Shown here in pieces: positions 1 through 36,676 of a stretch of 64,000 nt of DNA. Origin of the DNA: Bugula neritina (lineage: Eukaryota > Animalia > Bryozoa); NCBI GenBank assembly GCA_964035545.1, contig OZ037767.1:10550581-10614580 (forward strand), given 5' to 3'. Made by a program: the position numbers and the translations under genes. The notes beneath the pieces were generated by a model that saw nothing but the letters and a program-made list of their open reading frames with translations, searched no databases and was not told where the DNA came from. Each line of letters opens with the position of its first letter. The stretch's first letter is position 1.

Positions 1-855
1 TATATTTTATAAAACGGCAATTAGCTATAACCTCACCAAATGTATATAGGCCTATTAGCGGAGCTTCACCTTGTAGTTTGGTAGTCTTACCATGATGTTT
101 TTAATACTTTACAAAAAGGTCAGAAATGGCTATATCTATAGATTGTATCAACATTTCATCTAACTTTTTGGGCAAACAAGCTAATAACAGTGATCAGTGT
201 GCAAGGATCAAGTGGTACATTGTGCCCCGCGTGGCTAAGTTGAAAATAAATGTGGTTCAAGAAAAGTTTATTTTAGAGTTTGTTGTTATACTAGTTAAGC
301 AATGTAAAGACAAGCAATAGCAACAATATCAGTAAAATCTAGGCTTGTTACCTTTGAGTGTAAAAAGTTATAAAGCTTTAACAACATCATAAAAAATTCA
401 CAAAAAGTAGGTAAAAACAGTTTTTGACTTGCCTCTTCAACATGTATGCTCCGTAAGTGTTGAAACTACAATAGCTGAAAAATTATGTCAATACCTTTTT
501 ATTAAAAAAAATCACAACTCTAAGTCAATAAGTTCTCTCACAATTTGACTGCCTTTTTGTACCGCTATGACCTTTGTGCCCCCGTTACCCCTATTATACT
601 ATACTCTTTTTCCACTTCGCTCAAACTGATATTCTAGTTAGAATAATTAAACCAGTACATCTAAACCCATTTGACGACACAACAACATTATTTAAGCAGA
701 ACTAGAAACTCTATAAACTCAAAGCACCTTATAAATAATATAGCATGGTGCAGATAAAATATGCAGACATAAATTGCAGTGAAGGTGCTTTGAATTAAAT
801 AAAATTAAAACCGCACCAGTATACATGCTATCAGTGACCGCGTAAAAATATCTAA

Positions 856-12477
<11,622 letters not shown>

Positions 12478-14467: not shown

Positions 14468-15375
14468 TTAAACCAAAAAGAAAGAAGCCCTGGAGTTGAA
14501 ACTATTGATGACATTGCCATCGTCATCTTCTTCTATTTTGTACACATGATTCAGTCTTTCTTCCATAGTACTGGCTATCCCAGCCCTAAACTTTACTGTG
14601 CGTTTATGTCTAGTACCATTACTGGTGAAAGCCATGCTATCTACAATTAAATCAATTTGTATTACCATACAACCCCTTGCTTTGCATTTGCCTAAACTAT
14701 TAATTGTTGCGATATGATATCAAAGGATAATCTGGTATGTATACACTATTTAGCATACGCTACAGACTAGCATATTATGTTTCATTCCTATTCTATAAAG
14801 CTTAAAAATAATTAGCTTTTTAGAAAAATAGGACTGTTGAAATATATTATTTGACAAGCATATTTTATTGACAGTTCATCTTTTATTGCAAACTAAGTAC
14901 TCACATGTTCCAGGCTTAGAAGCATCAACAAAATTGAAGTAATAGTGATCAATTTCACTGACGAAAATCAACACTTTTTTGTTTATGAGATCTTTTGTGT
15001 TGGGAGGTAAGTAATAGAGTTCAAAATCTATTAATCCATCAGGCATAAATTCACAGCTGGAATAAATTAAATATGCAACATAAATTCAATTTCAAAAGAC
15101 AAGTTGCAATTTTGCAACAAAGGTTGCATTACAACTATATCATTATACTATCGTATTGCAATTGTATTATTATGTTATTACATTATCACTGTAAATTACC
15201 ATATCATTGTATTATCACTGCATTATTATACTGTTGCATAATATAACTAGAGCAGCACTCACTAAAAAATAGTCCCAACTGTTTGAACACTTTGTTGGTA
15301 ACTTTGAATGTTTGGATGAAGATCTCCAACTTTTATAGTTGTTGTCAGTGTAGCTTTTTCTTTCTTATCCAAATC
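14468..15375 (-). other. Exons encoding a GOLD-like C-terminal domain
   Basis: GTIFYCEFMPDGLIDFELYY...ASKPGTYSMAFTSNGTRHKRTVKF lies directly after the Sec14 domain, as in SEC14L proteins (PG.Y.L.F.N...K.V.F). Confidence 0.6.
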
Positions 15376-18300
15376 CTTAAAAATCACAAAAAAGCAGCTA
15401 GAATTCTGACAAAAATAATTAATATTAACTGAATGCCTTCCTAACATCATTTTTACAAAGGCTAAAACCACTGACCATATATTTACTAAGCCAGTGCTAT
15501 AACCACAAAACTACTGGTGCTCTTTTTTAAGCATTGCAAATACTCGTAATTTTGAAAATTGTTACATGTAATTTTGCTATAGCATTCATTGGCATATTTG
15601 TTTTATTTTCAAATAGTTAATATTGGATTTCTTACTAGTCTATAAACAGCGACTCACCTTTAGATAGAAATGAGGTGGCACTGGTACCAACATGTTCATA
15701 CCAGAGTAGATATTGTATGTTCCGTAGAGAGAAGGAGGAAGATATTGTTTATCTATCACACTATGCAGTATATCTCGCCAGTCATCTCCATCTAAGTGCT
15801 GAGTGTGAAACCCTTTACGGTTTTCAAAGAGTGGCAGATAATATCGGTCCAGCATCTTTTTACATCTACTACCTAGCAGCACAGCAATAAATATATACTG
15901 TATACATGGCCACAGCACACTCAGCTGTGTCTATAGCAACAATATCTATATTAATAATGTGTCCATAGCAACAATATCAAAAACAACACTGTGTCCATAG
16001 CAACAGTATCTATAACAACACTGTGTCCATAGCAACAGTATCTATAACAATACTGCGGCTATGGCAACAATATATTCTATTAATTTACCCATTTTAACAG
16101 TGTGTACAAATTTATCTATAGTCAGAGTATACACAAACATAATTTATATGTAGCAATAAATAGTATACACAGCTGTATCCATAGCAACAAGATCTATAAC
16201 AACACTGTGTCCATAGCAACAGTATGACACTCTAATAAAGCTGTATCTACAGTGAGACTATATGCAAACATATTTTAGCACATGTACAAACATAAAACTT
16301 GTAACCATAACAACAGGGAAATTGATGCTCTTTAGATTTTTTAGTTCTTCGTTTACAAGCTGACATTTTACTCATAATTCCTAGTTATATATCAGTATAT
16401 AGGATTTAATGAAACTGTGCATGTCTCAACATACTTTATATCACCATGTAGCTAGTTTATTCATAGCATGACGTGCAAAGCACCAAACGAACTTGTTATA
16501 CACACCATGTATAATGTAGACATTCTTGAACAGGCAGGGATAACTCCTACACAACAGCAGGAGAGAAGCATGAAACCAGCCCAGGCCTTGCATAGCCTTA
16601 GAGTCAAGATGATATAAGAATTGACTACAATCTACAATAAGGGTGGAGCTGTACCCTCCCTAAAATTAAACAGAACAACATATAAATAGAGCTAGAGCCT
16701 ATCCAAATTCATAGGTTTAAACGTTAAACAAACAAAGAAGACTTTTTAAACTCTAAACATATATAAATTTTATAGGCTAAATATTAAGAGTAAATTCATA
16801 ATATATCTCACCTCCTTGGACAGGTGCTCCACCATTTCAAAAAGATACACCATATGAAGCATAAACTGGGAACTAGTACAGCTCTTCGCTAAGCCATTAA
16901 AATCTATTTTATCAAACTGACAAACAAATGTGGGGTTATCGGCCCGATCAACACCTGTACACTCGATGATGTTTCCATGCTGCAACATAATAACATAAAT
17001 ACACTCAATGTTATTTCTATGCTGCAATATAATAATATAAAAATAATATTATAAATATGAATAAAACTTAGGTAAAGTTCATGCAAGGTAGATCTTGTAA
17101 GCTGACACATACCTTCAAGAGAACTTCCTGGGGAGCATATCTCTGATACAACGTCCATGCCTCTATACTAGATTTCAATCTTACTGAGTTTTTCAAATAA
17201 AGTTTAGCGTCTGCCAAACTGTACGCTAAAGCATGCAGTAAATCAAAATACCATACAGGAAGACATAAACCGCAAACCAAAATTACGCACCACAAACCCA
17301 ATTAAAGCAGAAGTACATACTGTGCCCTCTGCCTTTTTTGTATTGTTTATTATGTTGTAAAACCTTTTTTTTATTTTTGGGAAAATGTTAAAATACACTG
17401 CCAGCAAAGTTGAAACCAAATTTATTCAAACATTGATCGACAAAACAAAGTACAATAAAGTTAAGATGGCACAAATATTTATTAAAAAATGTGAAAAAGC
17501 TTGACCAGGTTTTATGCTGAGGATAAAACAAAACAACCATTGCATTGTTTACTAAATTCATTTCTATTGACAGTAAAATGTCAATTAACATGCATGAGAA
17601 TGAAAATATAGACTTTGTACTCCAAAAATGAATAAACCCTCTTGGCCGTTTCTTATTTTTGTATTATCAAAACTCACCCTTAACCCATCTAGAAATGTAA
17701 GCTGATGTCCACCCAGCCCTGATCATCAAGCTACATTCATTCAACAAGGAACTAGCTAATGCCTGTTCAGTAGGGTTTATCACTTTTCCATTTACTATTG
17801 TATCTGGATCAATCTCTGTTATCGGATCCTTCTCACTTCTTTCCTGTTTTCTATCCTACAGGTATGGGCAAGCAAAATGCTTATCTATTAAAATAATATC
17901 TAGTAGCTTATTATTGTATCAATTTTTGTTTTTAGGGTATTTTTCACTCTTCTCTTAGTAGTAAATACAAATAAAGAAACTCAATCTATTTAATTGTAAT
18001 GTCATTTAAAAAAGTCTTGGAAAAATTTGGAGTTATAGTTTTCAAACTGCAATATTGATGTTTATGCTTCTTGCTGTAAATAAAAAACATTACCAATAAA
18101 GATGCACACCTTAAACTCTGTCAAAGCTTTCTCTAAGTCTCCACCATTGTCTTTGAACTGCACAATTGATTCGTTAATCATTAATAGAACCTAAAAATAC
18201 CACCAACATAGAGCAACATTTGGAATCTGAACAGTTCTTAAAGCTTTGCAAAAGTCCTGCTGTGTTAGCACACTAATATACACATTGAGTCAAATGATGT

Positions 18301-21300
18301 TTTAGAAAAATTGATTTAAACAGAATAATCATACTCTAGTGTAGCACGTGTGGTGTAAACATAAATAATAATTTTATTAACATGTTTGTAACAGGTTGGT
18401 GTAAACAAGTACAGTATGATACTCTTCTGAAAGACAATGCCGTAGACATAGCTCAATTTGATACTATGATAAAAGACATGACCAATTGCAACACCATTAG
18501 GCAAATGCTTCAGCAAAACACCATGTGATAACACTACTTTTTATGACACAACATAAGCTATGTCATTGTGAATCAATGTTCAATATTAAATAAAGATTGA
18601 CATAAAATGTCAGATAACTCATTCATAACTCAATATATGACACATTCATGATACTGCCACAGAATTCCCAAGATGACTCATATCATGACTTGTGCAACGC
18701 GACTCATCTAGGTGACCGATGACTGACTCACCCATTTTATAATGACTGCGAGAGTCATTTGCTCATTACTGCTCTCTTCATCTATGTGGATAACACTGAG
18801 ATATGGGTCACACAGATCTCTAGCCTCCAGTATGTTTAAGATGTTTGATGCAACTGGTGCATACTTTTTAGCCTGTGCTAGAAGGCTTGCCACTCGGTTA
18901 TAGCCAGATACCTCATTTCGAACATCCCACCATCGCTAGAAAAGTAGAGATGTTAATTTAAAAATAAGAACAAATAAAAGGCCACTGTTAATGAGGCTCA
19001 TCTAGTCAAGCAAAGATGAGAGAAGCAACACAAAGAATTGTATAATAATTTGGTAAACATTAAACATCAGTATCAAATGTCCAATATTGTATTGCAATAA
19101 TGAGACGGTAAACTAAGTTACAAATAAGAATCTTTGTTATTCTGTTTCATTGAAAAGCTTGACTTTTACTGGCATCAAGGTTTCTACACTATACAAAATG
19201 TATGTTAGAAAAACCAATGCAAAATTATAAAACATGTTCTTCAACTAATATAATAAAAGCTATATTTTTATATCAAACAGATAAGATAAATATAGAGCTA
19301 CTAAAAGATGGAAATTATATGGTAAGATAATTGCAAACCTGTAAGGTGAGATGATCCTTCTGCAGTACGAGGAGAAACGCTTTCAGTATATCAAAAACCT
19401 TGAGAGGCACTATTGTGTATTTGTAGAAACCCACAATGTCTACTGGACTGATTTCAACTAACTAGAAAAACAAACAGCCAAGTACTATAATGTTATTTAA
19501 TGTAGTGAGTTTGAAATTCCAAGTATAAATTATCAACAAATGATGATAATATATTTACATCAAGTTTGATCTCTTCAATACTGGTGAGGAAGGAATTTAA
19601 TTCAGCTGCACTGTCTATAAGCCCTTTTAGCTTGTCATGGAGCAGAGATATAGGAGTAGCAAATGCAGGCGGCATTGATGCCTTCAGTGTCTTTAAGCTC
19701 TGCATAGCAATTTCTAAACTTTTTATATGCAGAGATAGTTTAGGGCATTTCTCTATCATTGCCATTTCTATTTCTGCCAACAGAAAGTAGGTTTGTGACT
19801 GTAAAAACTATTTTGATCAAATAAACTGTTGAATAGTTCCTATAATCTTTCAGCTTACGTTGCAGAAATTTTTTTTCCTGAAACTGCAAATAGCTCACAT
19901 ATGAAATGAAAGCTTGTTATTGTGTAGTGTAACATATTGGCATACGTTATTCAATAGTATGAATTAGCATGTTACTGTATAGACTATAGCATGACGCAAA
20001 TATGTTATTGTTTAGTATGGCATCATAGTATAAGCATGTTGTTATATACTGCATAGCATGACACAAGCATGTTATTCAATAGTGTGATATATAAACACAT
20101 TATTGTATGTATCATAACTCTTACCAGCCTTGATGGTCAGATACTTTCCACAGATGACAGACAAAGCAGAATACTGATCTCGAGCTTTGCTGTCTAAGGC
20201 AGCGTTTGGGACATCCTCATTCATCAGAGCTATTCTCACATAATCCTCTTCAGTTAAATGCTGTTACATCCAAATAGGTTTATAAGATACAGTCACATCT
20301 CATACACAAATACATCACCAGGTTCCATTCACATTACCTACTACAGAGTTGAAATTGCAGCATTACATTTGTAATGTCATTACTGGTTGTGAGATACTAA
20401 AACAGTAAACAATGTCATGTGAGTTGTGGCACAGCGTCACATGACATGCTGAAACAAATTTAAAAACCATTCATTCAGATATAACTTTAACTGTCATCTG
20501 AAAATCTTACTACACCATTGAGAATTGTAGGATAATACAGAAGTTAAAAGCTCCCAGACACACACTAAAACATTCAGACTAACTTTTATTTATTTTTATA
20601 CTGACTTTTATAAAACTATCTTGCATAATCCGAGCGACTAGAGACAACGCAGCTTTGTATACTCCATCTTTATCTGGAAATTCCAACTCTTCAAATTTTT
20701 TTGTCAATTCAAGCAGATGCATGATGTTCTGGGTCTCTTCCGCTTCAGCAATAGCGTATCGCAACTCTTCACATATGTTCTGGTAGCCCACAACTGAGTG
20801 ACAGAAGATCACTTGGTGAACTGACACTAAGATGCTAAGCCAATTCTAGCACCACACATGATTCAGAAAATATTCAAGTCACAAACTTAAAAGCATTTTT
20901 TCTCAATAAGCTAAGTTCATTCATTATGAGTTAGTCTAACATATGAGGAATTAAATACAATTTTATAATTTTGCTTAAAAACAGTCCAGCTTTAGTAAAA
21001 CTGCGTTTAAAACCAAATGAATTGACTATAATTTTTAAATTATTTGATGCACTACTGAAGTATAGTATTAAGCAAGTTTTACAGAAATACTAGAGCCATT
21101 CAAAAATTTAAAAGAAACTCAGCAGTTACAATAGTAATAATAAAAAGTTTGAAACTCAAAGTGAGTGGAACTTACTGTTCTGCTGCATGTTTGAGTTCAT
21201 TTTAGTCATCTGAGAGCTCAGTTGATTGCTGTACTTATCAATTAATTGTATAAACTCCAGTTTCTGAGGATGAGGCAATGGTTTGAAAAAGTCACGCAAA

Positions 21301-24300
21301 CTATAAGAAAAAACACACAGAATTACCAAATCTTCTGACGCTAATAAATGCATACCGGCAATTTGATTGTTGACTGAAGTTCTACAAAGAGTGTTTATTA
21401 AACAATTTAAATTCTTGCATCATAACATTAAGCCATCAGCTGCTCTAACCTTTCCTAGTATTATACTATGTAGAAATGTTACATGGTAATATATTCCGTT
21501 ACAGGCAATAATGTTTGTTTTTAAGGCTCTATTAATTATAATATGTTATATTATATTATTGCATTATCTATTGTTGTATTATATCTTATATGCACATATG
21601 TGTTTCATAGCTTCTGTAATTCGTCTTCAAAACTAGATGGTAGAACAATAACTTCTATTTTATAGTATAACTAGTCAAGTAAGAAGGAAAAAGATTTAAA
21701 TTTTTGGCTAAACATTATTCTAAAGTAAAGATAACTGCTTGCTTATAGTAAGATATGGTATAAGATCATAGACTATAGAACCCTTAGCCTATATAATTTT
21801 GGAGTTTGACTATATCATAAGCATTAGGTTGTGCAATATAACTCTAAATATGTGTGTTTGTACTGCTCTCACTAATATCACACGCAACTCACTCTTTTAA
21901 ACTAGACTGATCTTGCTTGCTTTTTGCCTCTTCGATTTCTTCTCTCGCCAACTCCATGAACTTGTCGTCTGCCTTTAGAAGAAGATCTTCTGCATCAACA
22001 ATTGCGAATTGCTTGACACAATCCTGGGCACTCTTGATTTTGCTCCATAATGGCTGGATAACAAAAAAGCAATATTGTTCAAAGCCTTTACACAAAAGTG
22101 GCTAAAAAATGACTTTAAAAAAAGGAGATGCCATTCATTGTGAAAAATTTACCCGACACTCTTTGCCGTACTCTAACATCTCTCTTAAGGGGCTGAATGT
22201 AGTGTCATACAACTTTTTTTCAGCCGTCTTTATTGCATCCCCAGGGTCATCAATACCAACTCTACTAAACTCTATCCGAGCAGCAATAATGGCAGCAGAC
22301 AGTTGTTGTGGAGCGACATTTGAGCTACTTAATAGTCTGGTAAGAAAAGGTACGAGTTGTTGGTATAGAAGAGCTTTTCCAGTTTCTTCCAACTCTAAAA
22401 ATATGCCGATGCAATAGAAAATTGAAAAACAAAAAAATGTAAATACTAATTAGATATATGTATTGCCGTTTAAAAAGGCTTAGAATAATTATAGTATGTC
22501 ATAAAATATGTGTATATAAAATAAAGCACTGGCTCCAGTTATTACTATTGAACGTTATGTCACTACTACCAAGAGACATTAACTCAGTCTTAATAATTAT
22601 AAATATTTAAAAACTACTAGCAACATAGTTTTGAACAAACAGACTGACTTACTTCTCAGGTCATTAGTTATTTTGTACTGCTTTTTGCTGAGGTTAAAAG
22701 CCGCTAGAATTACAGCTAGATCTCGAGGTTGTGCTTTGTTTTTGATGGCTGCTTGCAGTTGCTTGGATATTTCATCATACAGCATCTAAGAACACAGAGC
22801 AAAATATATACATAAAAAATTAAACATCTAGAGTTTATAGCAATGAAATTAAATATAAAAGTTGTTAATATTCTTTTTCTAACAGTGATAGTAATTATTT
22901 ATATTTATATATGATAAATATATTTACACACTTTATTAAATAGGATATATGTTTTGAACATAAAGCGCAAAGCTTCTACAATATAAAAAGTGAAAAATAT
23001 AGTAGCCATTGTTTAAAATATACTTTTTAATTTTAGATTTTCTAGTAAAATACTTTTTTGCCATAGAAAGTAAAATAACTAAAAAAAACCTTACGTTTCA
23101 AATTTTATAAACATTACAAACTATAATCTTGTTTTATTGATTAAAATTATAGCTTGCTTTCAGTGCGTGTGTTAGCAAATTTCAAAAAGCAAAGTTTACG
23201 TTTATTTTTTTTTGGTAAAGTTAGATATAGCAATAAAATTTAATAAAAGTTTTACTACTGTACTTACAAGAAGTTATTACAGTTTCAAAATACAAATGAG
23301 TAATTTTAATTTATCTAATACACATCAGCAAATTATGACTAAAGTTTAAAGTTTGCTAAAAGTTAATTAAGATCAACTATATGGAATGAGCTGGAAGAAG
23401 ATCCTGCAACCTTAAAGCGCAATGTTAATGAAAAGCCATCATAGTTTGCACATCTCAATTCACTAAAAGATCAAGAAAAAACATAGAAAATCAAGCGAAG
23501 TTAGAGAAAACCCTGATTATTCAGCTGTATTTGTGAATATTTTATTAGGGCAAAATATCATAAAAATTAGCAGTTCAATATTGTGAAAAATAGCTAAAAA
23601 CTAGACATATTGAGGATGTACCAAATTAGGTAAAATGACTCCAATATACAAAATCCAAACAGTTGTGTGTTTTTACAAGCTTTGACTGAAATAATTCAGT
23701 CTAAAGATTATGTGGTGATTTTCATCATGAGTATTTCGGAGTTACCTTCTCCGCTCGGGGCATCACACTATCCATGTCTTTCAGTCCATGGCTATCTAGA
23801 CTGCTTCTTAACTGAACTATAATGTTATGAATCTCCTGGGCTGTATGTGCTTTCTCCAGAGAGTTAGCTAGTGGTAGTATCACAATGTTGTAGAGGTTTC
23901 TGTTGGCTTTATCAAGGAACCCTGACACGTCCTGCATTGTAAGTAAAGTCGCGAGTCTTATGATATTAAGGATTGCTCAAATTGCATACTGGGGTGCAAT
24001 GCATTCAGAGACACACTCATATACTTAATTAGAATAAATCGAATCATTTATGAGTATAAAGATGAGTCAAACCACATATTGAAGTGTTCAATATCAAGCC
24101 AAATTCAAATAAAGTTGTTGAAAGCAAAGTTTTACAAAGGTAATTGTATTTTTGATAAAACTGGATAAGCATTTTGTCCTAGCTAGTGAGACATTTACCA
24201 CTACTCCATAGAAAGCAAACTTGTTGATGGCGTTTCGTATTTTGGCAGAATCTTTCCTTTTCATTTCTTCTGCTAGCCCTTCTTTCAAAATTTTATAAAG

Positions 24301-27300
24301 CTGAGTCTTTGCAGTCTTAATAAGACCTTCATGATCTGTAATGTTGTGAAACTCCAAATCTCTCTCCGTCTCTGTTATGGCATCCCGTAGCAGCTGAGCT
24401 GTTGGCTGTTTGGTAGCTTTTTTTAAGTTGGCTGTCACTTTATCTGCAAAAAACAGCAAAATCGACTAAAAGGCTTTGAGTTATGAAGATGTCTAAATCA
24501 TACATGAATAAGGATAAATTTTATTGGTGTCATTCAAAAATTAATTTTGGGTGAACAAAAAATGGTTATATGTTTGAAGCTTCAAAAATTTAATTGAGCA
24601 ATGTATGCATAAAGAAATGAAAATAGACTAGATAACTTTGTAAAATGCAAAAACTGGGAGCCCGTTGTTTCAAAGGAATTATAATTAGTAAATAATGTCT
24701 ACTTATAACAAAATATTAGATAAAATGCACTCACTATATATTGCATTCTTAGCTTTCTCTAAAAGATCCATTTTGTCAGGTATTTTATGCTTTTTAAACT
24801 CTTGAGATGCAAAGTGCAGTTCCCACAAGTCACGTCTTTTCAATGACTGAAATGTTTTATGATTCACAAATTACAGGATAGCTGCCTGACACATTGCTTG
24901 ACTTACAGATCATGCGGCTTACAGGCATCACATGGCATCACAAGCTTACATGTAAACCACTCGACATTTTGGCATCTAAAACTTTTGACCTCTATGCGTT
25001 GAAAAATGAAAAGTTTGGAGAATAATACTTTGGAAAAAAATATAGCAAAAATGCTCCCATGCCAAACTTACATATATAAAGACATGAAAAACTAAGTTTT
25101 ATTTTAGAAAACAGTAAAAAAGTTACACTTCTGTAATACAAGAATAATAATTTTTTGCAATAACAAGTAAAAAGTTGAAAAGTATCCAAAGTCTCAAATG
25201 AACTATTACTTATCTACTACTAAATAAAGTAGAAAATAAGAAACTATGTATAATAAACTAACCCTGAGCAGTTGTTTAGTGAGAAGTTTAGCTAAGTTGT
25301 CAGTAGCTTGCTTGATCAAAGGGTTAGCATCAGCCGTGTCTTCAGGCATAAAATGATTGTAGTTTTCTAGAGCCTCTGCAACATCTTTATAGTTCTAAAG
25401 CAGAAGGTTCTAGAGTGATATTAGTAAGACAGATTATATTCCCAAAAGTAAGACAAGAAGAAAACACAATAAAAATTAACAAGAAATAGTAAATTATACG
25501 AAAATGACTTTATAGGTAATTGCAGGAAAGTTTGAATGACTGCAAAAATCATTTAAATATAATATTATAGTTGAAACAAAACAAAACATTTGAACATGTC
25601 AGTGCTAGTCAGCATATTTACTGCAAAAGCAAAAACAAGAAACCTCTAAAAAGTTTTAATAATTTTATTTAGTCATCATCAAGAGCAAAATATTTCACTC
25701 AGTCAGTTCTCTGGCCAGGGTGTTTCACTCACATGACTGTTGATGGCATCTATGAGCTGTAGAATAGCCATCGCTTTCTTTGCCAGTATTTGCTTGGCTT
25801 TTTTCATCAAATTCGTTTTATCGGGATCAGCAAACATCTCATGTTTTGTCATTTCCTGTTAATTGCAAATGAAAATGAGACATTTATTAGCGTGCACTAC
25901 TAGCAGTGTTACATATTTTACAGTAAATATATTCAAGTAATTTCTTTTAATATAATAAAAACTGTTATATTAGTAAGAATGTTTAGTACAGCTTACAGCA
26001 ACGGTGATGCCCATTCCACGAATATCATGCTCGTTAATTTGCTTTTCCAATTTCTTCTTTAAAATATCCTTCAGAGCATTCTAAACCAATGAAAAATAAA
26101 TTGGCCATAGTTAGCTATACTGGATAGAGACAATGGACTTTTGGGCAAAACATTAAGGGTTGATGGCACGTGAATATACAATCACACACATTGATTATAT
26201 TTATAAAAAGCCAATTTACGTCAATACTCAATGTTTGTTAAACTTAAACAGAATCAAGAGATTTATTATGTGCATACTGTATTCAAACAGATGTGTTAAT
26301 TTGAAGGCTTCAATAAAAAATGCATGCAGACAGCAAATGCAGAGGAATCTGCTATAACACTAACTCTTAACCAAGTTACTTAAAGTTCTGTGCTCAAAGG
26401 TAGTAGCTGATCATCCAACCTTATCTGTAAAAGATATCTTAGTCTCTGGAACTTCTGAATTTGATTTAGTAAACTGAGTTTTAGTCAGCGCCTGTGAAAT
26501 CATAGCATGATTTTCTGTATAAATGGCTTCTAAGAGGGTCTTCTTAAGGGAGGCTTGAGATGCTGTGTAAAACATAGACATACAAAGGCATGTCTGTAAG
26601 TCAAACTAATATTTTACCAGAAAACACATGTCTGCAAGTAAAACTAATATCCCATTGAGAAAATGGTTATACTCACCAACGTCTGCAAGCCGTCCAATAG
26701 AAAGAATCTTCTTTATTGTTGGACTTTCTTTATGATGCAACATAGCTAACCAATAATATCTAGTCTTCCAAAAGTAGAACAAAATAACGTACGTGGTCAT
26801 CACTAGCATTGTGCCCTAAAAACAGTAGACTGGTAGAGTGATATTACTCACAATAAGCACATAATGAATTGGGTCTAGCACAACAAGTCTAGTTATACTC
26901 ACTAATAACACAGCATAGTCTTGCTGGCCAATCTTGTATCCAAAAACTCTCACAACGAATTGAAACTCAAACCTACAGTTGGTGGTAGGATCAACCTCTC
27001 TATCAAAATACAAGCAATAGACTTTAGTATATTAGTAACATCTAACTATTTCGGTGGTATACAATTATGATCAACATTGATTTAATAAAAAGTGTGATAA
27101 ACTAGAGTTACAATAATTCCTCTTGTCAAATATGCTGTTAGCTTTGTATGATCCATAGTTCTAGAAAATTACAGCTTACTTGGCAATTAGCCAATTATTC
27201 AGTAACTATGTATAAGCAACTTACAAATTGGAAAACTCCAATAGGAAGAAGTATTCCGGGATGCCATCTTCTGAAGGAGGTGGATAATAACAGTCACTTT

Positions 27301-30300
27301 TCTTGTCACAATGCCAGTTTATGGCATTGTTGTTAGAATCATAGACTGGGTAGCCATCATGAGTTTCACGAGGAAAATATTCTTCAGGGGTGACCATTAG
27401 AGAATCTGGTTGCTTTCCATCACTAAAAACACAGACAGACAGAAAAGAAAAAGAGAGGAAGAAAGAGCAAGAGAGAAAAAGAGAAAAGGAGAAAGAAAGA
27501 AGGAAAGAGAGAGAGAAAGAGAGAAAGAAAGAGAAAGAGAGAGGGAATGAAGGAAAATTAATCAACAGCAATACATGTAATTGCACTGATTGCTATCAAA
27601 GTAAGGCATAGTTTTATTAGTTCTTGCCACAAAATCAGGAAACAGAACTTGATTCTACCAAACTTTCTCATTTGCAACTGATGAATAGGAAAACAAACCT
27701 TTGGTTGAAAGAGTTATAAAGCCTAATTTCCTCTGCAGAAAACCTTCTCATTTGTTTGTAGGTGTTGCCTCCTCCTACCACTTTCAAAGTATATTTTCCA
27801 TAAAAAGAAACACTTTGGCCAAGATTCAGGTAAATGACTTTGAAGTGAGGATAGAAGGCTGTGAATAAACAGAGAGCCACTCTTTCAATTAGTTGTAATG
27901 TGGGACAAAAAATACAAACAGAATAAAATCTAGATATGTGTATTGTACATATATTATTAGGACACAGTTAAGCGCATGACATGCAGACCAATAGACAGGC
28001 AGAAAGAAGATACAACTCCTACATAAGCCAACTATAAATACAAGCATGTTTTTTCTCTTGAGGTAAAAAGCACATGAGATGAAGTGAAGGCGAAATGCGC
28101 AGATTTGTAATAACTTTGAAAGGAAAAAAAAGTTTCATTGCATAAATATAAAACGCCAATACTTTGTAAACACACATGCACGCACACACTTACTGTGTTG
28201 GAAGTAAAAACAGTTTTTATATTCATCTCGGTTCAAACAGTTCAAATGTGTCTGAAGAATTTCTAGTTCTTCAATTGATCGTTCCAAGTCAAATGACGGA
28301 ACAACTTGTGGCGGACAACCAGCAAAAATCTGCGTGTTGTGCAAACCCTGAACATAAAAAATATAAGCCAAAGTTTAGTAAGAAAACAAAATATACTTTA
28401 GAGAAACAATTTTACACTCAAGTTTATTAAATTGCTTTATGTAATGTATTTTTAAACTTTTGGTTTATCGACTTTGTAAATTAAGTTATGCAATACACTG
28501 CTATCTGAACAGCCGAACTGCCATTAAGTCAGAAGTTTTGACCGTTGGTGAGCCGAGACTTCTATTTTTCTGCAACAAATTCATTTTGTTCTACAACTTT
28601 TGAGATTTAGTTTGCATCCTGATAGCTGAGGATCTAATTCATTTGACTTAGAAATAGTGAAGGTGGCAACTTACGTGAAAGTGGTGAGTTGTAGAAGGAC
28701 AGTAGGTATCTAAGGTGGAAACTTTCAATAGAAGAGTAACTTCTTGGAGATTCACCCCTGGCACCTGTTGTCTAGGTGTGTAGCTATCATTGAGCGACAT
28801 TGTTACCTGCGTTGTATGATATGTATACAGTGTAAACTTTACATACATCATGTAATTTATTTGATATATACATACAGTAGAGAACCTGACTACTCTCTCA
28901 TATAACCAGTAGAGTATACATTCATTACCTCATACAGCAAAATTTGTCTCAAATAGTTGAAGGTCTTTTTGACGTTGATTTTCACAACACCAGTAACAGA
29001 CAACTCCAATGAGAGTCTCATGTTCTCCATGTCGCTATAATCTGCATAGATCATGTACAAAATTCGGTGTTAATTGTGTGACCAGCATTTATTTACAGCA
29101 AACTACAACTCCCAAATAGCTCCCCCTATAATACTTTACATGCAAAGCATCATTATTCATTTTGGTTAAAACTTAATTAGCAAGCCAAATATGCTGAAAC
29201 AACAACAATCGGTATAGCAGTGCCAAGTGGCTACAGAGTGAAAAAGAAAAAGTCGGAGAATTAGATAGGATTCAGCACTAGAACTAGCCCACATCTATAA
29301 AATGTCAGTTTAAGCTATGCCCATTGGAGCTCTTGGAGCATACATACAAAACTGTAGATTAAATGGAGTAGCTGAAAACAAGTACTCACTGATTCAACTG
29401 TCTCGTGACTCATACTCATTATTACTTAGCAATTACAGCGTAGCGAGTCCTAATCATGTAATGATATGCATGTTGTAGTCATAGCCATAGAGTCATAGTT
29501 ATGTAATCATAGTCATATAGTTATAGTCATAGTCATATGGTCACACAGTTACATAGTCATAATCATATAGCCATAGTCATATAGCCATAGTCATATAGTG
29601 ATTATAGTCACATAGTCATATTCATATAGTAAGTTGGTAAGCCAACCTATATGTTCCTTATTGCTAGCGCTTTGTACAGCAATGCTGACTGTGAAATTTA
29701 TTTCAGAACCCTTGTCAAGGTAGATAACTGACGGAAGCGGTGCAAATCCAGTAGAATGGCTTTGACGACGTTTTTCCTACAAGTATAAAGACAGCAATTT
29801 TAGTCGGTGGAAAAGCAAACCTACCAGCAATAAAATACTGAAAGCAGAGACACCGGTGTAAACCAAAAACCGGTTACAAAAAGTAAATATTTTGCTGCCA
29901 TAGATGAACTTTCAAATTTGTTTATATGTTTATTTACATATTTTGTAACGTGTTTCAACTAAAGGACGTTCATAACTATGCAACATTATAGAAAGATAAA
30001 ATGTGTAGTCATAGTCATATTACTACGTTAAAACACAAAAATGGAAACACGTCGGAACATTAGTATAATTTCACATAATTTCTTGTAACCAACATAAAAA
30101 TACAATTATTATTTACAAAACAGTGTGCGCATATATAAGAGGATAAGCAATCGACCAATTTTAAAAAAGCAATTTCAAAGAGTTGCACAGTCCAGCAACA
30201 TATAGTGATGCATTACACTTTAAAGAAGTAGCATAAAACTTGAATTACTGTATGAATTTACACACTACCCAAATACTAGTTTTTATAATGAGTACCATCA

Positions 30301-33300
30301 ACAAGTGTTCTTGTAACATTCAGTAAGTTACTCATAAGACCTACTTGGGTGTCGGAGCGAAGAATTCCAAAGCCGTAGCTAGTTAGGTCAACCAGCGCTG
30401 CCATTTCCTTCACGAAGGAAGTATAAAACTCGTCTGATTCGTTGTTTAAATTGCTCAGGTGACGAACTTGGTTAAGAAAGTTGTAAACTAGCAGATGATG
30501 GATTAAAATAACAGGCAGCACTTGCTTGTTAATACCTTCAGCTCTCATTATAGGAAATCCTCGCCAATGATATTTCTGAATAGTGTAAAGTAATAAAATT
30601 ATAAAGGCTAAAAATCTGTATCATATCAATTTAGAGGTAGAATTTTACACACATTATGTGCATCAAATCTTATGTAATATTCATATGTAACATGTAATAT
30701 TATTTGTGATATGTCATGTACTTATTAAACAACAGCCAATGATATGTAAGCTCTCCCTCTCAACATCACAAAACAGAGTAAACAGAAATTAGCTACGTTT
30801 ATGCAGAATCACTCTAAAAAGCAAATTTAGTAATAGAAGCCTACAATAAAACAGATAAAATACATTATACGATCCTTACCTGATCCCTAACATAGTCTTC
30901 TAGAACCATACTATTTGTTATAACTTGATAGTTACACCTGTGGTCATGGAAATCTGAGTGGTTGCTTGATGTTTCCAGTCTGAAAGTTTAAAGAAAACTA
31001 TCTGTAATTTTGAGATTACTCAGAAAACTTAGGTGTTGCAGTTCTTGCCACAGAGCGGTCATACTAGTCATATAGCAAAGACATAATTGTGCCAAACAGA
31101 ATGAAACATAACTTCACGTTGAACTACATCATGTGCAAAAAATGATCAAATGCATATCAACAAAACAAAATATGCTATAGTATTATTAATAGTTCTTGTG
31201 GCTTATAGTAAGCACAAGGTTATGGGTCCAAATCTTGATATGGTCATTGCATGGTGATGTCAGGCACAATTACCCTTTGTGACACCAAAAACAAGTCATT
31301 AGGCCAATTAAAGCTACCTTTACCATCAAGGGTTCTTTTGGGAATATCAACATCAAAACTCTGAAGTTTTCTCATAAAATAAAAGTAGAATGATCTTCTT
31401 TCTAGATAATTTTTTATTCTTTATATAAAAACTAACAAACATGCAATGGATTGTATTATATTGCATGTATTGGATATAATAAACTTTGTATTAGTTATAT
31501 AATTATATGCTAATTAAATTTTAGTTAATTTGCAATTTTATGTAGTCAATCTAACTTTCTAAAGTATAGATATAGTTATTATTTTTTACCTTACAGGCCT
31601 ACAGCATACCCTAACATGAAAAATATAACATGAGAACCTACCACCACAACTACCACCGCCATTACTACGAGTACTACCACCACTACTACCGTGTACTTAC
31701 CACTACTACTACCACTACCACAACTACTACATACCGGCCAAACAAGTCACTATCTGCATCATCTTCATTAATCACATCAGCAACATTCACCTCAACCTTC
31801 AGCAAACTTTCATGTGGTCTGGCAGCATTCTCTTCAGCTAGCAGCTATCAACCATCAAATAAACAAAAGATCAATCACAGTATGATTTAAAATAGTATAT
31901 TTGGGCTGAACACATCGGCATAGTTATGTACTGTATACTGCATATCAACTTCTTCTATAGAAACAGAAGACAATTTAGCCTTAGGACTACAATAATAGCT
32001 TTGACTTATGTAGCTCAATCTTAGATCTTCTGCTACATTGGTAAAGTATTTCCAGGTCTGACAATCAGAAAGTGATAATGCACACATGATCATTTGTGAT
32101 TTACATAGTAAGGAGAGTAAAACATGGAGATATGAAAGGATGCATGGTCGTGTATAGTTGTAGAGAAAAATAGACACTTACAACAAGAAGTTGTCCACTC
32201 CGTATAAACTTCATACTTATTACATTGTGAACAGCTAGGAGATCTACATAAGAGTCGGGTTTTGTTTTACTCGTCACTTTCCTCCAACCATATGAAGGAT
32301 AGATCTGGCGTAGTACCTCATTCTCTGCTATCCACAACATAATCTGTAGAAATAGCAAGTCTAGCAAGTAGAATCTACAGCATACTATGCAGAGATGGCA
32401 CATGTAATCCACTGAATAATTAGTAGTAAGGCTAAGCTTGACAAGCCTAATCTACAGCAAAATATATAAAAATAAATTTTGCAAGGGTGATCCACCACCT
32501 AATCACAATAAATACATCTGCTACACAGAAGTAAAAGTCTTGACTGTATTGATTAGTACCTGCTTTGTTGGTTGACCAGAATAAAAAGCCACGAGTCCAC
32601 TTTGATCTGCTGCAACCAAACTATAACTAGCTTGTTCATCTGCATTAGTTAGACTATAAAAATGACCTCCCAAAGTTCCATATATCACATGACTTCCAGT
32701 CAGTATTAGGTTGTTTTGAGAAAAAGACAAAGACGTGATGAAGTCAATAGTTATCTCCTTCTTTATATAACAATCTGTACAGATGGCGCCAGCTCTCTGC
32801 TTTTCAGCCAATGTTTGCTGCATCTTCATTTCTGTTTCTATTTCTACGCAATATTAATCAAGCAATAGGATAATTAAAACAATTTTGCAAAATTCATATC
32901 AAAAAATTAACACTGTAATCAACAATTAAGCAGTATTTGAAGCTGAAAATTATCAAATTAATATAAATTCGTTTGTCCAGTGACAAGCCAATTAAAGATG
33001 TAAATGAGATAATAGATTTTTGCTAACACTAACAAATAATGCAGGAAATATTATGAGTCCAGTACTTTGCAACTAGTAAGTAAGCAAGTAAGCACAAAAA
33101 CTTTACCTGCTGTGAAAAGTGAGTCGAGCTGCTTGTGAACCGTTTTGACTAAATATCTCTCAAATCCTAACAGCAAGACTGGTTCAACGGTATCAGCTGT
33201 TATATAAATAAACATTTCAGTGAATAAATTAAATTTTTTGCACATATAAACTTATACAAAACCAATGTTAAACGCAGACTTGAGAAGTAATACAGCTTAT

Positions 33301-36300
33301 TAGGCAGGAGAAAATTTTTGGTGAATTGTTGATTTTTAATTTAATTACAGCTCAGATCAGCTATACTGAAATCTTTCGCTATCTTTAGCAAACTAAATGA
33401 GAATTGAGACCTTATAAAACCATGCAGCTTCTTTTTTTTGTAACTTTATTGAGGAAACCAATAAACTAGCAAAGTAGATAGCCAGGAATATTTCATAAAA
33501 ATGCAGACTCTATGCCATAGATTATGAGACCTCACCTACACTGTATCTCCACACTTTATAGATGATGTCATTTAACCTGGTTTCCTTAGTGAGAACATTA
33601 ATGTGGGAGGATATAACCCCGTCATAGCAAGCATCAACTATCTCACATTGCTGGTTACATACTAAGCTGATGTTGACCGGCTCTAAGACAAGTCTCTCTC
33701 CACTAAGAGCTAAATACACAACAGGAAGTAGTTGAGGTGTAAGGGGAAACTGATTATGCTTGATGTAGAATGGAGTGAATAAAGTATGAAACTGTAATTA
33801 AAAAAAATTAGATAACTGCTACACTAAATGGCTGCGATTTTTGTATTCATACATAGTCCAGAAAGACAACTACTGACCGAGTTTATAAGATGAAACATGC
33901 TCACTTACCCTGTACTGGATAGTAGACTGTGTTTTTAGCAAATACTATAATGCGAGGCTCTGAGTTGTAATACCTGCTATCAACCTTGAGTTTTTCTACG
34001 CATTCTTTTAATATTACAACAAAAGACACTCTGTAGCCCCCACCAATCGTCATCTCAATGAGTCCAACCTACATATTATAGCAATTCAAGTTTCATACTT
34101 TTCAATTAAAATAAAACAAAAATTCCTTTGTTGTATAAAATGTAAAACTAGATTGCCGGATAACAAAGGTGTGAACCTGTGTGTATTCAAATAGCATCAG
34201 GAATTGTTTGTCTCTGGAACAAAATAACTCTACTCTAGACTTCAATAACAAACCAAAAAGTAAATGTATGTACAGAGTGGAAGCATAATTTACTTACGTT
34301 AGTAGCAAATAATACTCTAGAATGTTCTGTTACAGCTGAATGAATGATAATATCTGTGGGGGGTTTACTAGTATTATTGCACAGGTCCCTTTCTCTTGAT
34401 ATGTCGTTGAAAGAAGGCTATAAAAATTCATGAAAAATTCTACGCTTGAGCAGCGATTGAATATAGGTGAATAACTCAGCAACTTACTTTAACAAAATAT
34501 ATACATGCCTATGTTACACTAGCCTATGGCATTTATAAATAAAAGAAAGACCAGAGCAGAAAAACATAAAAGAGAAATGTTATAGAAACTGAAAAGAGCA
34601 ATTTAACTTTTTATATAATGATCGCAATTAACTGTGTAATTATAGTTATTTGTATTTATTAGCTCAAGATTCATTTGTCATTATAATGTAGAGAAACAGC
34701 TATTAGGCCTCTCACTTTGATAGCATAAACTGAGCTCCATTGATTATCACTGAAAAGCACTGTGTCTGTATCCATGGTTAAAATGTTCATCACTGCAAAG
34801 CTTGATATCATGGGGAATCTTTGATAGCCTTCAGATAAGAAATTCACTTTTATTTCATATAATATAATATAATATAATATATATAAACTGATATTTTTCA
34901 CACGCACGAACACACATCTATATATACAATCATAGTATATATATAATTAAGGTTATAACTAGAATAATGTAAATATGTATGTCTGTAGGCCCAAATCAAC
35001 AACAAATAAAATAAACGAATTAAAAACAGAGAGAGTAGAAATGTATTTTAGCTAATTGAAAATACCAAAAAGCTGACTATATATAAATGCTGCTGTAATA
35101 CTCCCACCTTTATTAACAAGTCCGGCAGCCACTTTAGCATCAAATGTAACGAGACTACCAAAGTTACAGAAACTCCCACAGAATGGATTGAGAATGAAGT
35201 ACTCTCTAAAATCATATGAAAATAAAAAAGGGAATTTTTGTAATTAATGACACTGGAAAGGTTTTGTGAAAAGAAGCAGCGGTTGAAACTGCACCATGAT
35301 ATTGAAAATCACAGACAAAGCCCAGACTGCCTAAACGAGACAGTCCTTCTGATGTAGGAGGCAACTCCCACTATGTAAAACCAAACTCCATGCGTCTTAA
35401 TTTATACTTCAGGGTAATGTTGTCATGGTAATAGAAATACATATAATATTACAATTATTATAAATGCTGTGCTTATAAAAGAAACCTGTATGGAGTAGAG
35501 AAAAGGGCTTGCGGATATTCTTCCACAGAAATCTCAAGGAAAAGATCTCTATCATTGACAGGTAAAGGAGCGACCCAAACAGGTTCACATAATGCCCTGC
35601 ATGGCTTCGCAGATCCATTGAGTACCGATGCATCTGTCAAATAGCTCTCAAATTCGTTCTCTACTGAACCTGCAAGTTTCAAAGTGATGAAATATGAACC
35701 ATTTTCTTCTGTTCTATAAGACATGATATGCATCTGTTTATAGAGACCAAATGACTAACAGCAACATTACTTGCACAAACTTAAGAAGGGTGTTACTCTG
35801 CTAGCCGCAACACATAGAATATACTGCCATGACTTCTAAAATTAGAAATACAATGATATTAAGCAGGAAGCACACAAGTGGCCACACAGAGATTAGCATT
35901 TTGGCACAGCTTCTTCAGACCACAGAAAACTTGAGTCCATCTTCTTGAAATTTAAGTGAGTACAAAGCATTATACTGAAACAGAAGCTGCTTTTTCATAA
36001 AAATTTATTTTCAATTGCATAAAAATCATAAACTAAAAAAAGCTGTGAAAGTTTATTCTTACCAACATGTATCCCTTCTCGCGTCACATGAGAATTACTA
36101 ACTTTGATATGAACAGCAACATCCTTTTGAGCAACTAAAATTGCAGCTTCAGGAGAGTAGACATCATTACAGAAAATACTCAGTTGTATCATATTCCTGT
36201 AGCCCACCAGTGCATTCTGTAATGAAAGCAGTTAGTACCTGTTATTTTTCTTACTGTCATGTAAATGGAAACAAGTTTTCAAATATAAATTTCTATTCAA

Positions 36301-36676
36301 CAATGTTTCAATGAAAGTATATGTGCTGGATAATTACCCTGGCTAAAAAATATGCAAAGGCTTTCCTATGAAAGAACTTTAGTTTGGTGTTTATTTTGAA
36401 TTTAGTGTTTCTGACGTTTATCCTCGTCACCTCTCGTATGACAGCTTTGCCATCAACCTACCACAAAACATAAAAAAAGTAGATTCAAAATTAATAAATG
36501 ATTCAATTGTATCTAGTTCATAGGTTGAAGCAAAAAATTTAATGTATACATACCTCCAAAATTTTTGATTGCCATTTGCAAGTTTCCCTAAGAGTTGACA
36601 AGTTACCTTTAAATTTACTAATGCCAAAGCCAATGAAGCACCACCAACACACAATAAGAAGAAATACTTTTTTCAT
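14468..36676 (-). CDS. CATSPERG: CatSper-gamma-like gene, copy 2: signal peptide, ectodomain and TM fused to a long cytoplasmic tail (helical repeats, dynein-MTBD-like segment, Sec14, GOLD); ~48 exons, ~2400 aa
   Basis: Exon 1 (36676-36554) gives MKKVFLLIVCWWCFIGFGIS-KFKGNLSTLRETCKWQSKILE (signal peptide plus CxW motif). Later exons match recalled CATSPERG motifs: LRQIYPSYGW, PLPSVIYLDKGSEINF (cf. LPERIFLDKGTEYSF), IFAGCPP, FYPHFKV...SFYGKYTLKVVGGG...FSAEEIRLYNS, INWHC...C...PEYFFLLEFSNLEVDPTTNC. TM exon 26815-26677. Tail exons: 26562-26420, 26080-25997, 25855-25733, 25394-25263, 24846-24735, 24443-24199, 23931-23746, 22785-22653, 22394-22153, 22053-21893, 21300-21176, 20793-20606, 20260-20125, 19773-19559, 19461-19339, 18935-18732, 18190-18110, 17855-17678, 17225-17113, 16979-16812, 16659-16506, 15872-15658, 15375-15263, 15056-14905, 14640-14468. 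All are GT-AG, phase-compatible and stop-free. CATSPERG identity is more certain than the fusion. Confidence 0.8.
15658..17760 (-). other. Exons encoding CRAL-TRIO_N + CRAL-TRIO (Sec14) lipid-binding domain
   Basis: AYISRWVKAYSLADAKLYLKNSV...YAPQEVLLK...GVDRADNP...IDFNGLAKSC...TLIVDCS...SYPCLFKNVYIIH...WRDILHSVIDKQYLPPSLYGT...VPPHFYLK parallels SEC14L2-type LLRWLRAR...PPEVI...GYDLDGCP...LDAKGLL...IIYDC...NYPETLKRLFVV...[21 protein letters not shown]...IPRKYY. Confidence 0.8.
15924..16315 (+). repeat. 32-bp minisatellite with core TGTGTCCATAGCAAC
   Basis: Cores at ~15926, 15958, 15990, 16022, 16054, 16174, 16206, plus GTAACCATAACAAC at ~16301. Confidence 0.85.
18110..19600 (-). other. Exons encoding a dynein-stalk microtubule-binding-domain-like segment
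   Basis: Spliced peptide IKLDLVEISPVDIVGFYKYTIVPLKVFDILKAFLLVL...RWWDVRNEV...LLAQAKKYAP...TLAVIIKWVLLM follows the recalled MTBD pattern L..L...DI.E...Y..PP..V..V..A...LL...W......L...L..YD...A..L..WV..M. Divergent; pattern match by eye only. Confidence 0.5.
20606..26562 (-). other. Exons encoding ~10 degenerate ~40-45 aa alpha-helical repeats (tail of copy 2)
   Basis: Recurring pattern L..A.....D...L..A...F..H.I.D..G.I..A...L, e.g. LLRSLKRRDLWELHFASQEFKKHKIPDKMDLLEKAKNAI; LLRDAITETERDLEFHNITDHEGLIKTAKTQL; LSAAIIAARIEFSRVGIDDPGDAIKTAEKKL; HLLELTKKFEELEFPDKDGVYKAALSLV. Confidence 0.7.

Follow-up and report, generated by a model that had tools for sequence, protein, structure and literature searches.

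The window analysed here is a 64,000-nucleotide stretch of the bryozoan Bugula neritina genome (contig OZ037767.1, positions 10,550,581 to 10,614,580). On its minus strand lies a gene whose first half codes for CATSPERG, the CatSper-gamma subunit of the sperm CatSper channel, and whose second half would code for a long cytoplasmic tail. Stop-free stretches of this strand form a long series between 36.7 and 14.4 kb, and they can be joined into a chain of 48 exons reading from 36676 to 14468, all with GT-AG sites and without a stop, for a product of about 2,386 amino acids. The chain was obtained by dynamic programming, with scores derived from conservation among four copies of the gene and from splice-site matrices for donors and acceptors. 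The acceptor of exon 18 was revised to 28806, as the site chosen initially is not an AG in copy 2 and a CAG located 30 nt downstream is common to all copies. The revised model comprises 7,161 coding bases for 2,386 residues, with the ATG at 36676-36674 and the stop codon at 14470-14468; some exon boundaries in the ectodomain were set by weak splice sites and could be in error by a few codons. An earlier reading of this DNA, referred to below as the original prediction, had described 25 consecutive exons after the exon for the transmembrane (TM) helix, open to position 14468, and the exon-chain model recovered the same number, with GT-AG sites and in frame. Single exons were used as queries in all database searches, and the joined model was used for the frame, hydropathy, internal repeats and the ratio of nonsynonymous to synonymous substitution rates (dN/dS).

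14468..36676, minus strand: whole gene (copy 1), at about 10,565,048-10,587,256 of chromosome 3, a chain of 48 exons, with frame and splice sites kept in the other three copies
Exons 1-6, minus strand: 36676-36554, 36457-36338, 36216-36063, 35669-35486, 35205-35108, 34828-34716
Exons 7-12, minus strand: 34417-34298, 34068-33909, 33709-33536, 33196-33107, 32843-32560, 32343-32182
Exons 13-18, minus strand: 31844-31735, 30979-30880, 30575-30414, 29776-29647, 29041-28929, 28806-28675
Exons 19-24, minus strand: 28347-28194, 27858-27699, 27422-27225, 26999-26903, 26815-26677 (TM exon), 26562-26420 (post-TM exon)
Exons 25-30, minus strand: 26080-25997 (t1), 25855-25733, 25394-25263, 24846-24735, 24443-24199, 23931-23746
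Exons 31-36, minus strand: 22785-22653, 22394-22153, 22053-21893, 21300-21176, 20793-20606, 20260-20125
Exons 37-42, minus strand: 19773-19559, 19461-19339, 18935-18732, 18190-18110, 17855-17678, 17210-17113
Exons 43-48, minus strand: 16979-16812, 16659-16506, 15872-15658, 15375-15263, 15056-14905, 14640-14468

The identification of the upstream part as CATSPERG, already made in the original prediction, is secure as judged from profile and structure matches. The features of this half are as follows.

36554..36676, minus strand: exon 1, start codon and hydrophobic signal peptide (Kyte-Doolittle hydropathy of 2.0 over residues 1-22)
26903..36676, minus strand: exons 1-22, CATSPERG ectodomain, residues 1 to about 1046 (Pfam and PDB matches, dN/dS of about 0.2)
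27699..27858, minus strand: exon 20, best CATSPERG_C match (Pfam match and similarity to a PDB chain)
26677..26815, minus strand: exon 23, single TM helix (hydropathy of 2.0, kept in all copies)

Exon 20 matched the Pfam family CATSPERG_C (PF22846) with 41.2 bits, the cut-off being 27.6, and residues 921-969 of the mouse CATSPERG2 chain 7eeb_F are similar to this exon (phmmer, E 7e-7); the chain 9ubw_F was also among the PDB matches. The CATSPERG Ig-like domain (PF22851) reached 20.6 bits on one exon (cut-off 27), and the beta-propeller profile (PF15064) gave no match exon by exon, in a search whose controls gave none either. Peaks of hydropathy were found at residues 1-22 and at about 1041-1066, and the helix at about 1047-1066 is followed by basic residues, beginning with K-T-R. 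Given a signal peptide and one helix followed by basic residues, the protein is predicted to have a type-I topology with its remainder in the cytoplasm. A large ectodomain, a CATSPERG C-terminal domain placed before one helix and the type-I arrangement are shared with mammalian CATSPERG (mouse CATSPERG2, 7eeb_F and 9ubw_F). Whereas the mouse CATSPERG2 chain, with 1,145 amino acids, has a short stretch past the helix, about 1,320 residues in a conserved open frame follow the helix in the Bugula protein. The long tail is a point of difference from the CATSPERG family and no reason to exclude the ectodomain from it.

The assembly that was searched (216,009,554 bp) contains four copies of the whole gene, all of them on chromosome 3. 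Besides copy 1, described above, these are:

1..12477, minus strand: copy 2, at about 10,536,600-10,563,100 of chromosome 3, a tandem duplicate with its ATG at 12477, whose CATSPERG part and post-TM exon (to about 859) lie inside the window
Chromosome 3, 2.238-2.283 Mb: copies 3 and 4, arranged tail to tail, at about 2,238,500-2,261,200 and 2,262,600-2,283,500

The junction intron of copy 2, that is, the intron between its post-TM exon and its first tail exon, is 2,653 bp long, and together with the tail it extends about 14 kb past the start of the window. When the model was projected on the three other copies, all intron boundaries were AG/GT save for the one acceptor that was later revised, and the length differences among the copies (+3, -3, -3 and -6) were always multiples of 3. 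Copies 2 and 4 are free of stops (2,395 and 2,394 amino acids in the first model), and copy 3 aligned throughout except for exon 15, which aligned in part only. Nonsynonymous (dN) and synonymous (dS) divergence, calculated by the Nei-Gojobori method, gave the following values.

Copy 1 versus copy 2: dS 0.24 in the ectodomain, 0.28 in the tail
Copy 1 versus copy 3: dS 0.40 in the ectodomain, 0.48 in the tail
Copy 3 versus copy 4: dS 0.22 in the ectodomain, 0.14 in the tail

The dS between copies, at about 0.14-0.5, is alike in the ectodomain and the tail, and dN/dS is about 0.2 in the former and about 0.15 in the latter. The similar dS of both halves and the low dN/dS indicate that the unit was duplicated whole and that both halves are under purifying selection in all copies. 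That the frame and the splice sites are kept despite a dS of up to about 0.5 is far beyond chance, and a chance open reading frame is ruled out by this conservation and by the purifying selection. The CATSPERG_C profile, with 35-42 bits, and the tail exons 29, 39 and 45 each matched the same four loci and none other in the genome, and neither a stand-alone CATSPERG gene nor a free-standing tail gene was found with this profile and these three exons.

Whether the two halves form one protein is decided at the junction between them, for which six sequences were available: those of the four genomic copies and of two contigs from another sample.

26420..26562, minus strand: exon 24, the post-TM exon, 48 amino acids, ending AAG/GT in phase 0, with codon-level constraint
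26081..26419, minus strand: junction intron, 339 bp, its last ~130 nt (~26225-26090) conserved and otherwise poorly conserved
25997..26080, minus strand: exon 25 (t1), the first tail exon, 28 amino acids, a predicted internal coding exon with a conserved acceptor

These boundaries, with phase-0 sites and with the downstream exon opening at an acceptor, agree with those given in the original prediction. Exon 24 is constrained at the codon level: of 40 changes, 25 affect the third position (P 1.5e-4), and copy 4 has lost 6 nt without a shift of frame. All six sequences share its phase-0 donor AAG/GT (AAG/GTTGGA in copy 1). In t1, 19 of the 26 changes among the six sequences fall on third positions (P 4e-5), and the dN/dS of this exon is 0.03-0.11. 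The same pattern holds for the 22 codons that precede its sole in-frame ATG, at codon 23 (14 of 21 changes, P 0.002). The acceptor of t1 is pyrimidine-rich, conserved and in phase 0 (TTTAG/AAT in copy 1), and an in-frame stop lies upstream of the exon in every case, as the TAG of the acceptor itself in five of the six sequences and five codons upstream in the sixth. An exon that is coding from codon 1, has a stop ahead of it and lacks a usable start needs an upstream coding exon, and the only conserved candidate is the CATSPERG post-TM exon, which is also in phase 0. As read from these substitution patterns, the acceptor and the upstream stop, t1 is an internal coding exon and neither a first coding exon nor an exon of the 5' untranslated region. 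An assembly error at the junction was excluded by a 763-nt unitig from an independent DNA run (depth ~150) that is identical over 25808-26570.

These features of t1 also bear on the view that two adjacent genes are present, with CATSPERG ending in K-V-G-stop and being polyadenylated in the 339-bp gap, and with the tail being a cytosolic protein whose transcription starts at a separate promoter, with a first exon that has escaped recognition. Such an arrangement would account for the weak donor, the nearby stop and the AATAAA of the junction intron. It would also bring the protein closer to mammalian CATSPERG, whose tail is short (match at residues 921-969 of a chain of 1,145 amino acids), and it would agree with a 2026 comparative study of eight CatSper subunits, in which substantial length variation across species was reported for CatSper1 alone (PMC13674862). 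Yet codon-level selection acts on t1 from its very first codon although no start occurs before codon 23, and both an in-frame stop and a conserved acceptor lie ahead of the exon. Moreover, in the intron, which is 339-2,653 bp long in the genomic copies, neither a mini-exon nor a poly(A) signal nor a block large enough for a promoter is conserved. We listed every ATG..GT phase-0 candidate in the six junction introns and found none shared between copies, by which a hidden first exon in this intron was rejected, and no AATAAA is positionally conserved in the aligned introns. In addition, the ends that read-through would produce are not conserved, and neither half is found alone in the genome. We consider two separate genes unlikely.

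Unspliced read-through in copy 1 would give K-V-G-stop; this end and the weak donor GTTGGA, both pointed out in the original prediction, were found at the junction of copy 1. In the six sequences, the reading frame past the donor continues for 1, 2, 10, 16 or >20 codons to a stop, with residues that are unrelated between copies, and ends so unlike in length and sequence are the behaviour expected of an intron and not of a conserved C-terminus. One might nevertheless speculate that a single locus gives two products, in that splicing at the weak donor and polyadenylation within the intron compete, and the giant fusion and a CATSPERG of conventional short length are both produced in sperm. The weak donor, the early stop and the AATAAA, taken together with the need of t1 for an upstream coding exon, would be consistent with this, and a short CATSPERG-only isoform arising by polyadenylation in the junction intron may coexist with the long form. 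On the other hand, the positions of AATAAA and the read-through peptides differ between the copies, so that the DNA gives no sign of selection for a short isoform, and we regard two products as rather improbable.

The lengths of the junction intron, which are 339, 2,653, 712 and 380 bp in copies 1 to 4 and 448 and 837 bp in the contigs of the other sample, are of relevance for a further alternative. In an operon-like locus, a leader would be trans-spliced to the acceptor of t1 and bring the start codon with it. In the trans-spliced operons of nematodes and tunicates, an acceptor typically follows soon after a poly(A) signal, and the acceptor of t1 does lie a few hundred bases past a possible poly(A) signal. 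Against this, the intercistronic distance would differ eightfold between copies, the leader would need to donate an in-frame AUG, and the literature found on spliced leaders and bryozoans consisted of chaetognath work alone. An operon of this kind is therefore very improbable.

Several observations weigh against a single fused polypeptide. The junction donor is weak, being GTT in three of the four copies, with GTT donors recurring elsewhere in the model; a stop follows within 1-16 codons past the donor in the four genomic copies; and an AATAAA is located 153 nt into the junction intron of copy 1, at about 26267. A weak donor, an early stop and an AATAAA make a terminated short transcript possible. 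The copies all arose by fairly recent duplication in one species complex, so that the conservation of the junction is partly a matter of inheritance, and the contigs of more distant species (0.7-1.5 kb) stop short of the junction. The sole sequencing run that contains the stretch is a DNA run, and the splice is read from DNA alone. Word-index protein searches with the post-TM exon, exon 29 and the t2 frames returned unspliced genomic fragments only, none of them transcript-derived or annotated. Lastly, the functions proposed for the tail are built on domain assignments that are weak.

Taking both sides into account, we favour as the probable reading one gene coding for one giant CATSPERG-tail polypeptide, with the junction intron spliced out. 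The proposal of the original prediction that a single polypeptide couples CATSPERG to the tail is thus the best reading of the DNA, in that t1 behaves as an internal exon and the frame is kept in all copies; the splice itself is the step that we infer. Such a protein would consist, in order, of a signal peptide, the CATSPERG ectodomain, one TM helix and about 1,300 further residues in the cytoplasm. This cytoplasmic part would in turn be made up of helical repeats of about 50 amino acids, a conserved helical module that matched no known family, a probable Sec14-type domain and a last domain of about 145 amino acids.

20125..25855, minus strand: exons 26-36, alpha-helical repeat region (internal similarities, unit alignment)
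18110..19773, minus strand: exons 37-40, conserved helical module with two hydrophobic helices
15658..17855, minus strand: exons 41-45, probable Sec14/CRAL-TRIO-like domain, exons 43-45 matching successive thirds of the domain
14468..15375, minus strand: exons 46-48, C-terminal domain of ~145 amino acids (dN/dS of about 0.2)

The repeat region takes up the first ~580 residues of the tail, with at least nine units of 48-52 amino acids and two predicted helices each up to exon 34, and a repeat-like motif appears once more in exon 35. The internal similarities reach E values down to 4e-8. No Pfam family was found for the repeats, a weak HEAT-like match being the sole trace. The post-TM exon had been thought to resemble the first helical repeat, an impression that was not borne out: a hidden Markov model of the repeats scored -1.0 bits on this exon and 3.9 bits on t1, with shuffled sequences scoring -1.2 +/- 1.9 and at most 7.8.

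For the module in exons 37-40, the original prediction had proposed a microtubule-binding function, and all tests of this idea were negative. The dynein stalk and microtubule-binding domain (PF12777) had no Pfam match in exons 37-39, and a genome-wide scan with this profile gave 42 matches, 0 of which were at the four gene loci. No dynein microtubule-binding domain or other match was obtained when the PDB was searched with the module exons using phmmer, and hhalign of exon 39 against seven dynein microtubule-binding domain exons of the same genome returned a probability of 0.5%. A genome search with exon 39 returned its own four copies alone, and the match of exon 37 to the end of the dynein stalk coiled coil was not significant (tblastn, E 0.12). 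A dynein microtubule-binding domain in these exons was rejected as unsupported. The AlphaFold model of exon 39 had a mean confidence score (pLDDT) of 52 and was unusable for a fold comparison, and the ESM Atlas gave nothing usable for exons 39 and 29. The module contains two hydrophobic helices about 70 residues apart, at residues ~1849-1868 and ~1935-1955 (19461-19339 and 18935-18110; Kyte-Doolittle hydropathy 1.7-1.8), which might be packed together as the core of a small helical domain or dip into the membrane as a hairpin.

Exons 41-45 are a probable Sec14-type lipid-binding domain. Exon 43 aligned to positions 8-63 of CRAL_TRIO (13.7-14.6 bits, E 0.03-0.06) and exon 44 to positions 40-89 of CRAL_TRIO_2 (13.7-14.3 bits, E 0.05-0.08), both below the Pfam cut-off. 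Compared with Sec14 exons of the same genome using hhalign, exon 44 gave P 0.022 over 42 columns (control P 0.51), and exon 45 matched these exons in the C-terminal motif with P 1e-4 and a probability of 57% (control P 0.41). The best PDB match of exon 45 was yeast Sfh5, residues 224-251 (E 0.22). The matches are collinear and belong to one clan, and no single exon passes the cut-off alone; a genome-wide scan with a Sec14 profile did not pick up the locus. Of the Sec14 domain put forward in the original prediction, the collinear series over exons 43-45 has stood, with each match weak and none above threshold. The likeness to Sec14/CRAL-TRIO proteins (yeast Sfh5, PDB 7y10, and the Sec14-like genes of this genome) lies in this collinearity and in a C-terminal LP..L.GG-like motif. 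Sec14 proteins are small and soluble, whereas the Bugula Sec14-like region is found near the end of a membrane-anchored protein of 2,386 amino acids.

A GOLD domain had been suggested for the C-terminus, and this suggestion was not supported by the searches: exons 46-48 matched no GOLD profile in Pfam, in a GOLD_2 scan of the genome or in PDB profile searches, all made exon by exon, which is a weak test for a domain split over three short exons. A motif near the boundary of exons 47 and 48 recalls the end of the GOLD domain of SEC14L proteins.

Relatives of the tail were found in contigs of other samples. Short contigs carry relatives of exon 45 that are 39% and 34% identical to it and end at the same 3' boundary, and relatives of exon 29 have 64-65% identity; near relatives of exons are present in JGI metagenome contigs labelled AY690838. 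These matches to exons 45 and 29 indicate that the tail family reaches beyond B. neritina. An exhaustive search with exon 45 among 1.84 billion representative proteins did not find an annotated protein of this gene, its four matches being three short genomic open reading frames and one repeat artefact. As searches of large public collections turned up no protein of the gene, automatic annotation pipelines may split or miss it. The literature searched holds no description of CATSPERG joined to a long tail, CATSPERG and Sec14 co-occurring there in gene lists alone. In line with the original prediction, the architecture is thus without an earlier description in the literature and the protein collection that were covered.

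In mammals, the CATSPERG ectodomain contributes to the extracellular canopy of CatSper, the sperm Ca2+ channel. No ion channel of greater complexity is known, and the positioning and control of its rows from the flagellar interior are still a matter of investigation; mammals use separate cytosolic subunits for this task. Further subunits are encoded in the B. neritina genome:

C7:929799-931362: CATSPERB (genome search)
C2:25473946-25474173: CATSPERD-like gene (genome search)

The presence of CATSPERB and of a CATSPERD-like gene suggests that a CatSper channel complex exists in this animal. The numbers of subunit genes are unequal, with four CATSPERG copies and a single CATSPERB gene. We propose that the fused protein would reside in the sperm flagellar membrane, where its ectodomain would join the CatSper canopy and its tail could act as a built-in cytoplasmic scaffold that ties the channel to membrane lipid or to sub-membrane structures. 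With a repeat scaffold and a lipid-binding module, the tail would be equipped to keep the channel at a particular membrane domain or to sense a hydrophobic ligand. It is possible, although we consider it less likely than not, that every CatSper-gamma carries a helical-repeat arm ending in a Sec14 module, by which the canopy would be coupled to membrane lipid composition or a hydrophobic ligand and perhaps to sub-membrane structures.

Cytoplasmic components of the mammalian channel have been described, namely CatSper-tau (C2CD6) and a cytosolic subcomplex of EFCAB9, CATSPER-zeta and ARMH2 (PMC8857959, PMC12638846, PMC13484710). CatSper-tau has a membrane-associating, lipid-binding C2 domain and targets the channel to flagellar nanodomains (PMC8857959). 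These components are separate polypeptides with unrelated folds; the Bugula tail, which would be linked covalently to a canopy subunit, is likened to them in its proposed role alone, and no homology is claimed. If the proposal holds, a canopy subunit with its own lipid-binding arm would be a natural experiment on the range of functions that the channel can incorporate, and it would amount to an integral sensor and tether for which no CatSper complex is known to offer a parallel. It would also offer a testable handle on the control of sperm Ca2+ entry by lipids or ligands in a broadcast-fertilising invertebrate.

Some further features of the introns were observed. The final ~130 nt of the junction intron, which are conserved, may contain the branch point, act as a splicing signal or have a regulatory role; copies 1 and 4 have an E-box-like CACGTG (26172-26167) in this segment. 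The junction intron of copy 2 contains a dispersed repeat of about 600 bp (window positions 1-600), of which there are at least 40 copies across chromosomes with 86-92% identity. Intron 13 holds a long imperfect trinucleotide repeat that is short in copy 1 (31590-31750) and much expanded in copy 2 (6004-7038), where it can be read as an open frame of 345 codons, poly-valine in translation, and the GC skew is -0.53 over 6001-8000. Similarly, a CT/TC-rich microsatellite is found in intron 20 of both tandem copies (27430-27590 and 1830-2150) and is longer in copy 2.

A scan of the large open reading frames over 37-64 kb of the window gave no recognisable gene apart from one frame on the plus strand (51177-51551) with a weak PAN-domain match of 20.1 bits, slightly below the cut-off. 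Elsewhere in the assembly, contigs C125, C193, C188, C86, C255 and C154 carry intronless matches to the dynein stalk and to Sec14 with many in-frame TAA and TAG codons, and they look like contigs of a ciliate cobiont that have remained in the assembly.

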